Below are positions 22,697 to 25,657 of a stretch of 64,000 bases of DNA, piece by piece. The first letter of the stretch is position 1; each line of letters begins with the position of its first letter. Under the pieces are notes generated by a model, which was not told where the DNA came from, searched no databases, and saw nothing but the letters and a program-made list of their open reading frames with translations. A program made the position numbers and the translations under genes. The DNA lies in the sequence record NC_041911.1; one strand, 5' to 3'.

Positions 22697-22730
22697 GAAA
22701 CTTCCTTAAACAAAAAATAAAAGATGGTAG

Positions 22731-22768
22731 AAAGAGCCCGAGGATTGCTCCTCGGGCTTTTATGCCGC
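22731..22768. terminator. Bidirectional hairpin terminator with TATGCCG tail
   Basis: AAGAGCCCGAGGA-TTGC-TCCTCGGGCTTT-TATGCCG. Confidence 0.8.
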
Positions 22769-24093: not shown

Positions 24094-24315
24094 TTAGAAA
24101 GCCCAGGTTTTCTCGCCAGAGGAGAGACGGTTGCCGAAGAGTGCGTCGAACACGGTGGACAGCAGAGCGCCCACCAAGAACATGGCCACCACCAGTACAA
24201 CCACCTGCATTACGAACACCACGCAGGTCCAGATGATCTGAGCCAGAGTCGGCAGGCAGATCGCGATCAGAGCAATAACAGCAAACAGCACCAGGTATTC
24301 GATAAGGGTCATCAT
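24094..24315 (-). CDS. Small two-helix membrane protein
   Basis: 73 aa, hydrophobic; TTGAGG RBS. Confidence 0.65.
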   Translation of the reverse strand: MMTLIEYLVLFAVIALIAICLPTLAQIIWTCVVFVMQVVVLVVAMFLVGALLSTVFDALFGNRLSSGEKTWAF

Positions 24316-24329
24316 GTTAAGTACCTCAA

Positions 24330-24655
24330 TAGTAGAAAGTCACTGGGCCGTACAGCGAAATGCACTGCAGTAGCACTTCGCAATACGGCCCCGCCGTATT
24401 GTCAGTTCTCGATAGGCTTGTCCTAAGAGAAGTAAAGCAAGCACATGCATGGCAGCCGTCATGTGCAACGGCCATAGCGTTTTGGTCAGTCTGGTGACTG
24501 TGTAAGTATTCACCCTAAGCGCGCTTGGCGCAAATTGATAACAAGTCCCGGATGCTGTCTAGTCGCATCTGACTAAGGGGTAATCGTAAGGCAGGTTCTC
24601 CTTGCCTTTGGCGTTCGTTGAGAGTGAAGCAACAACCCTGCTTCGTGGGTGCGCT
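24330..24655 (-). ncRNA. Putative structured ncRNA or leader RNA (about 325 nt)
   Basis: No credible ORF; at least 7 hairpins: 24355-24381, 24381-24401, 24441-24466, 24493-24514, 24551-24569, 24588-24608, 24626-24644. Confidence 0.55.
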
Positions 24656-24657
24656 AA

Positions 24658-25041
24658 TTACTTAGCGGCTTTGGCGGCTTTGGTGGCCAGACGACGAACG
24701 ATCAGTTCGCCCAGGGCCGCGCCAGTGTACCAGCCAACCACGGAGGAGGTCAGGTAGCCAACCACGGTGATCAGTGCCGACAGTGCGAACGTCACCATTT
24801 CACCGAGGCCCAGGCCTGCGACGAATGCGATACCGAAGTGCATGCCGAAGGCAATCGCCACGATGGCGGCGGTGAACAGCATCAGCACAGCGGCGGAACG
24901 CAGGAAGAAGCCGAAGCCGGAGATGCTCTTATCGCCGTCCTTCTTGGCTTCCATTTTGATACCGGCCTTTGCAGCCAGTTCTTCGGCAACGCCAACGAGG
25001 GTTTCGGCGCCAGCGTTCAGGTCGAGGGTAGCAGCAGTCAT
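24658..25041 (-). CDS. Membrane protein (2-3 transmembrane helices)
   Basis: TAGGAG RBS; long hydrophobic stretches; strong codon bias. Confidence 0.7.
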   Translation of the reverse strand: MTAATLDLNAGAETLVGVAEELAAKAGIKMEAKKDGDKSISGFGFFLRSAAVLMLFTAAIVAIAFGMHFGIAFVAGLGLGEMVTFALSALITVVGYLTSSVVGWYTGAALGELIVRRLATKAAKAAK

Positions 25042-25134
25042 GGTAAAACTCCTAAAGAGGTACTACGTTGATGGAAAAGCCAATGGATGGCGCCTAGCTC
25101 TTTGGCTGGCGTCCAGTGCACGCTCGTAAGAGCA

Positions 25135-25176
25135 ATGCTTATATGCGTACTCCATTTAGAATACGCATATAAGCAT
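25135..25176 (-). repeat. Perfect 15-bp inverted repeat within a structured leader
   Basis: ATGCTTATATGCGTA-12 nt-TACGCATATAAGCAT; flanked by further hairpins (25085-25114, 25122-25133, 25177-25200). Confidence 0.8.
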
Positions 25177-25207
25177 GCACTGCCTCAGTCGAGACAGTGC
25201 TGGTGTT

Positions 25208-25516: not shown

Positions 25517-25579
25517 GGAGAAACTCCTTATTTAGAATTGGATTTAAGAGCCACTTCGTTACTATAGCTCAGGTCTGTC

Positions 25580-25605
25580 ATATGTGGTTGAAAAAATCTT
25601 CATTT
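25580..25605 (-). promoter_or_regulatory. Phage promoter-like motif AAATGA-N6-TTTCAACCACATAT (copy 1)
   Basis: 20 of 26 positions form fixed blocks shared with 62394-62419; both copies are upstream of minus-strand genes. Confidence 0.6.
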
Positions 25606-25621
25606 CAATTCGACGTCACAG

Positions 25622-25651
25622 CGGCATAAAGGGGTGCCTAAAGGCACCCCT
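25622..25651 (-). terminator. Terminator of the structural operon, ending TTTATGCCG
   Basis: CGGCATAAAGGGGTGCC-TAAA-GGCACCCCT. Confidence 0.8.
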
Positions 25652-25657
25652 CGACGC

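Follow-up and report, generated by a model that had tools for sequence, protein, structure and literature searches.

We show by comparative sequence analysis that the 342-nt gap between ORF229 and ORF228 of Ralstonia phage RP12, both on the minus strand, encodes a predicted structured RNA of about 320 nt that is made from the gene strand. The RNA represents a previously undescribed family, restricted to RP12-like jumbo phages. RP12 itself is related to phiKZ (PMC5468394), and the RP12 paper does not mention promoters, terminators, or noncoding RNA. The window, by which we mean the whole 64,000-nt stretch of DNA that was analyzed, corresponds to bases 186001 to 250000 of the 279,845-bp RP12 genome and matches AP017924 at 100% identity; phage RP31 is identical here. 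Positions below are those of the window unless a genome or contig is named. The RNA and its two neighbors are as follows.

24345 to 24666, minus strand: whole structured RNA, beginning with the stop-codon hairpin and ending with the terminal rod (z = -3.59); homologous in 11 other lineages.
24658 to 25041, minus strand: ORF229, 127 amino acids, two to three transmembrane (TM) segments, alanine-rich C terminus; a homolog precedes the RNA in 12 of 12 lineages.
24094 to 24327, minus strand: Shine-Dalgarno sequence GAGG and ORF228, 73 amino acids, two TM segments; a homolog follows the RNA in 12 of 12 lineages.

ORF229 and ORF228 are small membrane proteins, each of which matches a PHROG of unknown function. 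Neither matched a Pfam family above threshold, and a word search with each protein retrieved only itself. For ORF228, the GAGG lies at 24327 to 24324 and the reading frame runs from an ATG at 24315 to 24094. The membrane protein-RNA-membrane protein module is located directly 3' of the virion structural genes. We note that the two-TM proteins of the ORF228 family are otherwise divergent but share a C-terminal ..(E)KTW(A/S/T)F(A) motif (24094 to 24120, minus strand, and homologs). We also note that the C termini of the ORF229 family are alanine rich and resemble ssrA-type degrons (..AAKAAK, ..AAAAA, ..AAVAA, and ..VAAA; 24658 to 24700, minus strand, and contigs L002, L006, and L018 to L028), and that the same GCN codons of the ORF229 tail form the stem that keeps the stop codon in a loop. 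A second ORF-free gap separates ORF230 from ORF229 (25042 to 25207, minus strand; 166 nt, or 206 nt in phage FLC1-1B) and is less conserved (0.53).

The RNA has homologs in at least 11 other phage lineages, namely, Ralstonia phages FLC1-1B and FLC4-3B, one IMG/VR genome (UViG_3300049460_000312, here UViG), and nine metagenome contigs obtained by way of homologs of the conserved structural protein ORF231. Thus, 12 lineages were available in total, some of them closely related, and in all 12 the RNA sits between homologs of ORF229 and ORF228. FLC1-1B, FLC4-3B, and UViG carry a gap of equal length at the same place. An nhmmer profile and a covariance model recovered the RNA at full length in contigs L018, L021, L022, L024, L025, and L026, and with parts missing in L027, L028, and L023; in some lineages, whole domains of the RNA are lost while the flanking genes are retained. 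Gap length is 334 to 345 nt in eight lineages, and gap GC content ranges from 0.34 to 0.54, such that the family spans phages of quite different composition. Between RP12 and FLC1-1B, identity is 0.71 in the gap, 0.47 and 0.53 in the flanking coding sequences, and 69% in the virion structural gene ORF231. We conclude that, for this pair, the gap is better conserved than its own flanking genes and is on a par with ORF231.

Burkholderia phage FLC9, the next relative, gave no match to the 5'-domain covariance model anywhere in its genome. Scans of IMG/VR with exact 18- to 19-mers and gapped patterns returned a single UViG, and a pattern scan of metagenomes returned nine stretches in which homology never extended beyond about 20 nt. 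The RNA is single copy in UViG by the 5'-domain model and in RP12 by a BLAST search of the gap against the genome for paralogs, which gave only one 15-nt chance match. We note a weak match to the 5'-domain model in contig L025 (7362 to 7479; 17 bits, E = 0.004), intergenic and just after the ORF231 homolog, that may be chance or a partial paralog. In contig L020 (Logan SRR32481273), a 358-amino-acid DUF7941 protein and a minus-strand gene replace the module downstream of the ORF231 homolog, and no homolog of the RNA was found within 4 kb of that locus. In P0015, the locus is rearranged and the RNA is not within reach.

The gap folds at -113.9 kcal/mol, versus -96.9 ± 4.7 kcal/mol for 100 dinucleotide shuffles, none of which was as good. 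An earlier, sequence-only reading had proposed a minus-strand, multihairpin RNA, and the hairpins it described, along with both of the competing pairings discussed below, are present. The structured element begins farther 5' than that reading had it, however, with a hairpin at 24666 to 24653. From 5' to 3', the elements upstream of the terminal rod and its competitor are as follows.

24653 to 24666, minus strand: H0, hairpin whose loop carries the ORF229 stop codon, UAA; found in 11 of 12 lineages, where stem sequences differ.
24626 to 24644, minus strand: H1, hairpin (GAAGCAG/UUGCUUC); 4 of 7 pairs compensatory and 97% of alignment cells paired in 11 sequences.
24588 to 24612, minus strand: H2, mini-hairpin GCY-NNN-RGC; the third pair covaries (CG five times, UA four times).
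24551 to 24576, minus strand: PK1, H-type pseudoknot with stems S1 (UAGUC/GACUA) and S2 (GAUGC/GCAUC).
24519 to 24531, minus strand: H4, hairpin (GCGC-CAA-GCGC in RP12); 3 of 6 pairs compensatory.
24487 to 24500, minus strand: H5, hairpin CAGUC-ACCA-GACUG, followed by conserved ACCAAAACG; nearly invariant, 96% paired.
24441 to 24473, minus strand: PK2, H-type pseudoknot with stems S1 (GGCCGU/ACGGCU) and S2 (GCACAUG/CAUGUGC).
24407 to 24430, minus strand: H7, hairpin that carries the conserved CCUAUCGAG box; its helix is paired in the RP12 clade.

Covariation supports this architecture. In an alignment of four RP12-clade sequences, 96.8% of cells are paired and 11 pairs are compensatory, compared with 0 to 1 in controls in which the pairing partners were slid by 1 to 3 columns. 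In the 5' domain, 14 of 32 pairs are compensatory across 11 sequences, compared with 0 to 5 in slid controls. Those pseudoknot stems that show no variation within the RP12 clade draw their support from the wider set only. In PK1, 3 of 5 S2 pairs are compensatory and 100% are paired, 2 of 6 S1 pairs are compensatory (both in 11 sequences), and the two consensus stems (UAGY/RCUA for S1 and GRURC/GYAYC for S2) both covary. In PK2, 3 of 7 S1 pairs are compensatory (10 sequences), and both stems occur in the nine lineages tabulated with sequences that differ, for example, GCACA/UGUGC, GCACGUG/CACGUGC, and GCGUG/CACGC; loop 3 is A rich in most relatives. H0 consists of the last two or three codons of ORF229 or its homolog, mostly alanine GCN, paired with the first bases after the stop. 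The AGG/CCU extension of H2 occurs only within the RP12 clade, H5 is absent from L026 and L027, and the H7 helix is only 70% paired across 10 lineages, while the box CCUAUCGAG is conserved family-wide. The wider alignments were based on MAFFT and contain small misalignments; in the rod, L024 is offset by one column, and thus the compensatory counts are conservative. The sequence-only reading had named a lack of structural conservation in relatives as grounds for its own rejection, and the many compensatory changes found here are the opposite result. The two pseudoknots, the stop-codon hairpin, and the operon-internal position were absent from that reading. Two further helices were considered and set aside. 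A long-range helix proposed by RNAalifold between GGCCG at the start of PK2 and ACGGC of hairpin A was rejected in favor of the local pseudoknot, which fits better, because two of its five pairs break and none covaries. A 3-bp helix that would close the ends of the RNA, by pairing the 5' end with the Shine-Dalgarno sequence, was too weak.

Might the gap not be an RNA element at all but instead be a DNA-level site (an origin, a packaging signal, or palindromes bound by a protein), code for a small peptide, or fold only by chance? The apex of the rod is palindromic (CUGCAG or CUAG), and the RP12 gap holds ORFs of 49 and 57 codons. The frequent G·U pairs of the structure, however, would turn into C·A mismatches on the opposite strand or in double-stranded DNA, which places the RNA on the gene strand and speaks against a DNA-level element. 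Moreover, ORF position and frame within the gap change from lineage to lineage, and the indels are of 1 to 2 nt rather than multiples of three, so a conserved peptide is excluded; in keeping with the earlier description of the region as ORF free, there is no annotated coding sequence in the gap in the RP12 record and no ORF conserved among relatives. Finally, compensatory changes lie far above the controls. Covariation and strand asymmetry together essentially exclude the DNA-level, coding, and chance readings, to which we attach a negligible probability.

The RNA also matched no curated family, as the sequence-only reading had anticipated. Rfam 15 gave no match at the gathering threshold in the window or in 10 homologous loci, and at E ≤ 10 the best E values on the region were 4.5 to 6, for unrelated families. 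ARAGORN reported no tRNA or tmRNA, Rfam gave no tmRNA match, and the 3' end of the RNA is the long rod. Likewise, there was no Rfam match to a group I or group II intron, and the flanking ORFs have their own conserved stop codon or Shine-Dalgarno sequence and start codon.

The 3' end of the RNA consists of a rod and, in RP12, a hairpin that competes with it.

24345 to 24391, minus strand: terminal rod with a UGCA apical loop; 13 of 15 pairs compensatory in 10 lineages.
24381 to 24401, minus strand: competing hairpin A, CAAUACGGC-GGG-GCCGUAUUG, 9 bp; its 3' strand doubles as the 5' base of the rod.

In RP12, the rod comprises 8 bp, a 2-by-2 internal loop, 9 bp, a bulge, 2 to 3 bp, and the UGCA loop, for a total of about 20 bp; across lineages it spans 13 to 20 bp, with 13 to 17 bp in L024, L026, and L025. 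The sequence-only reading had located hairpin A exactly, at 24401 to 24381; UACGGCCC is present at 24352 to 24345, one base from the 24351 to 24344 given, and GCGAAGUGC/GCAUUUCGC lies between hairpin A and UACGGCCC. The rod ends 17 nt before the GAGG (about 15 nt in that reading). The apical palindrome was considered as a kissing-dimer site, but the change of UGCA to CUAG is explained by a central GC deletion and so gives no evidence for one.

The lineages differ in the pairings that could compete with the rod. The 9 bp of hairpin A were matched by 3 of 2,000 shuffles. Its closing pair is C-G in RP12 and G-C in UViG, and the middle base covaries with its rod partner as well. Moreover, U288 and U289 are invariant in the RP12 clade, where they are mismatched in the rod and paired in hairpin A. 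An adjacent competitor of at least 7 bp is found only in the RP12 clade, L022 (8 bp, UAAUACGA/UCGUAUUA), and L026 (7 bp of unrelated sequence, UUGCUGC/GCAGCAG), and its sequence changes along with that of the rod; the L022 and L026 competitors each exceed at least 97.5% of shuffles. L021 and L018 have a different, upstream competitor, in which GGG(C/U)CC beside the CCUAUCGAG box can pair with GG(G/A)CCC at the base of the rod, with a C-G-to-U-A change read from the sequences. L024, L025, L023, and L027 have no convincing competitor, and competitor duplex energy was not above that obtained from shuffled upstream sequence (P of about 0.2). Thus, the mutually exclusive folds proposed by the sequence-only reading are only partly supported, with an adjacent competing hairpin in the RP12 clade, L022, and L026, another candidate pairing in L021 and L018, and none seen in the other four. 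A link to the ribosome binding site was not supported, as no conserved pairing with the Shine-Dalgarno sequence was seen for either fold. In all three clade members, the rod is favored over the combination of hairpin A and the inner rod by 9 to 12 kcal/mol, and therefore any switch must be kinetic, that is, cotranscriptional.

How the rod might act depends on the sequence that follows it and on the transcription unit in which it lies. The relevant signals are as follows.

24332 to 24338, minus strand: U-rich tail UUUCUAC, 3' of the rod; most lineages have a U-rich run at this place.
25622 to 25652, minus strand: canonical terminator after ORF231, a GC hairpin followed by UUUAUGCCG.
25562 to 25610, minus strand: promoter-like motif upstream of ORF230, AATTGAAATG-N10-CAACCACATAT-N8-TGAGCTATAG; nearly invariant in 10 lineages.
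22727 to 22757, minus strand: next minus-strand terminator downstream, after ORF224, a hairpin followed by UCUUUCUAC.

The U run begins 0 to 3 nt after the rod in L024, L022, L025, FLC1-1B, and L023 and 6 nt after it in RP12, and reads UUUCUAC in RP12, UUUUCUAC in L022 and L025, and UUUUUU in L024. UUUCUAC also follows at least three other hairpins in RP12, and the tail after the rod lacks the UUUAUGCCG signature of the canonical RP12 terminators. RP12 has 36 exact TTTATGCCG terminator tails, and most of those inspected directly follow a GC-rich inverted repeat. We note that many of the canonical terminators are bidirectional, with CGGCAUAAAAG on the other side, and that a conserved AUGCCG follows the U run. 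The promoter-like core has five exact minus-strand copies in RP12 (the one at 25562 and those at genome positions 248404, 176247, 120684, and 14943), and four, including the 25562 copy, lie just downstream of a UUUAUGCCG-type terminator. From the ORF230 motif to the terminator that follows ORF224, neither a canonical terminator nor a further copy of the promoter-like motif was found. This layout indicates that the RNA is internal to a unit ORF230-ORF229-RNA-ORF228-227-226(-225-224), such that the earlier suggestion of a leader holds only in part: the element lies within an operon and is not a simple leader.

According to a review (PMC7598289), the early promoters of jumbo phages are AT rich and about 10 nt long, and their late signals are poorly defined. 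A 12-mer, TTTTTACTACGA, has three exact copies in RP12 versus about 0.03 expected (genome positions 249746, 163724, and 115149, minus strand) and a fourth with one mismatch at genome position 16325, and two of the three exact copies closely follow a hairpin that resembles a terminator and has a U-rich tail. The 12-mer is possibly an AT-rich early-promoter motif of RP12. The tail after the rod resembles TTTTTACTACGA weakly in RP12 and closely in L018 and L021 but lies only 4 to 8 nt from the Shine-Dalgarno sequence. Judged by that resemblance, the tail could be a promoter, and if so, ORF228 would be independent of the RNA. We know of no definition of the termination signals of jumbo-phage RNA polymerases.

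Our best explanation, to which we give not quite an even chance, is that the RNA is a cis-acting, intercistronic sensor plus attenuator that sets read-through into ORF228 to ORF226. The conserved 5' 250 nt would be the sensor, responding to a ligand, a protein, or the act of translating ORF229, and H0 makes translation of the end of ORF229 one candidate signal. The evolutionarily labile 3' end would be the expression platform. When the full rod forms beside the U-rich tail, transcription would stop, or the transcript would be cut and capped, before ORF228 to ORF226; if the 5' base of the rod were instead sequestered by an upstream strand as transcription proceeds (in hairpin A, for RP12), RNA polymerase would read through. 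In this way, the RNA would adjust when the downstream membrane proteins are made, or in what ratio, relative to ORF230 and ORF229. A pseudoknotted domain joined to a sequence-labile helix, a U-rich tail, and lineage-specific competitors looks like an aptamer with its expression platform. The structure of the rod is kept while its sequence turns over, the same two families flank the RNA in 12 of 12 lineages, and the RNA lies inside an operon. Also in favor are the U-rich tail of most lineages, the adjacent 7- to 9-bp competitor that changes with the rod in the RP12 clade, L022, and L026, the other competitor of L021 and L018, and the invariance of U288 and U289. Against attenuation, four lineages yielded no competitor, the duplex-energy test was not significant, the RP12 tail stands away from the rod, without UUUAUGCCG and with its likeness to the possible promoter 12-mer, and 250 nt is large for a sensor domain.

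Alternatively, the RNA might act in trans. A stable noncoding RNA, perhaps the RNA of a ribonucleoprotein (RNP), could be excised from the operon transcript, with the stop-codon hairpin and the rod as its boundaries, the rod protecting its 3' end, and the conserved loops and junctions binding a phage or host partner. RNP RNAs typically have such size and complexity (here two pseudoknots and at least six helices) and such strongly conserved single-stranded boxes (e.g., CAGUC-ACCA-GACUG-ACCAAAACG, CCUAUCGAG, and CUAGA). Moreover, hairpins mark both boundaries, and length is held at 334 to 345 nt in eight lineages. For an RNA acting in trans, however, the strict linkage to the same two genes in every lineage would be unexpected, as would the single copy, the failure to find a promoter motif of its own, and the loss of whole domains from lineages that keep the flanking genes. 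We consider a trans-acting RNA possible but doubtful. We find it still less probable, indeed rather improbable, that the RNA is a passive intercistronic element for processing or stability that senses nothing, in which the rod, as an RNase III-type hairpin or a block to exonucleases, lets the upstream and downstream halves of the mRNA decay independently. RNase III sites of phage T7 are free to vary in sequence so long as pairing is kept, and the same freedom in the rod, its approximately 20 bp and internal loop in RP12, and its position inside an operon all fit such an element. An RNase III processing site is about two helical turns of double-stranded RNA, but the rod is just 13 to 17 bp in several lineages, and a passive hairpin leaves unexplained both the 250 nt of conserved, pseudoknotted structure upstream and the competing hairpins that covary with the rod.

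If the RNA regulates its module, as the sensor-plus-attenuator explanation has it, it would provide a handle on gene control in jumbo phages, for which termination and attenuation signals are, to our knowledge, essentially undescribed. In any case, it marks a conserved three-part module (membrane protein, RNA, and membrane protein). Moreover, RP12-like phages infect the plant pathogen Ralstonia solanacearum, which makes the system experimentally tractable. Natural RNAs of more than 300 nt with conserved complex folds are rare and, when studied, usually prove to be ribozymes, riboswitch-like sensors, or RNP scaffolds. Perhaps the RNA founds a new class of large phage RNA (about 320 nt, two pseudoknots, starting inside the preceding ORF, whose stop codon sits in a hairpin loop and whose protein has an alanine-rich tail) that couples translation termination of ORF229 or a ligand to expression of the next gene, or, within RP12-like jumbo phages alone, acts as a ribozyme or RNP RNA, but we regard this as unlikely.

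Known systems resemble the RNA in part. As in tmRNA helix 5 and the pseudoknots that follow it, alanine codons form the 5' strand of a hairpin with the stop codon in the loop, pseudoknots come next, the size is about 340 nt, and the upstream protein has an alanine-rich end (..VAA, ..AAA, or ..KAAK). Unlike tmRNA, there is no tRNA-like domain, acceptor or T arm, or resume codon, and the "tag" is the end of a full-length membrane protein with its own start codon. The RNase III hairpins of T7 and lambda are likewise long, imperfect double-stranded rods between cistrons of a phage operon, but here the rod is the last seventh of the element and is as short as 13 bp in relatives. Pseudoknot translational operators, such as those of T4 gene 32 (see PMC10690425 for phage gene 32 motifs) and ribosomal protein leaders, also place an H-type pseudoknot upstream of the regulated cistron, whereas PK2 lies about 130 nt from the ORF228 start codon and the neighbors are membrane proteins, with no RNA-binding protein gene. 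The motifs in that paper, a survey of structured phage RNAs, are 29 to 151 nt long and require at least three IMG/VR regions (PMC10690425); the RP12 RNA was seen in two IMG/VR records only, and thus the full element is unlikely to be among them.

Large "ornate" bacterial and phage RNAs such as GOLLD, ROOL, raiA, and OLE are, like the RP12 RNA, pseudoknot rich, linked to phages, and recognizable only by covariation (PMC12286853). The RP12 RNA differs in having no match to these Rfam families, in being smaller (about 320 nt), and in being limited to one jumbo-phage clade, in which it lies between membrane protein genes. Riboswitch and attenuator leaders differ in other ways: the RP12 RNA matches no Rfam riboswitch, contains two pseudoknots in a conserved domain of about 250 nt, lies between cistrons with its 5' end inside the preceding ORF, carries a competitor that is not universal, and ends in a tail unlike the canonical terminators of the phage. 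Yet as in those leaders, a conserved structured domain is followed by a long stem and a U-rich tail, the 5' strand of the stem can pair upstream instead, the sequence of the platform turns over, and the whole stands directly upstream of the gene to be controlled. Thus, although it lies outside every curated family, the RNA would, by analogy, work most like a riboswitch or attenuator.
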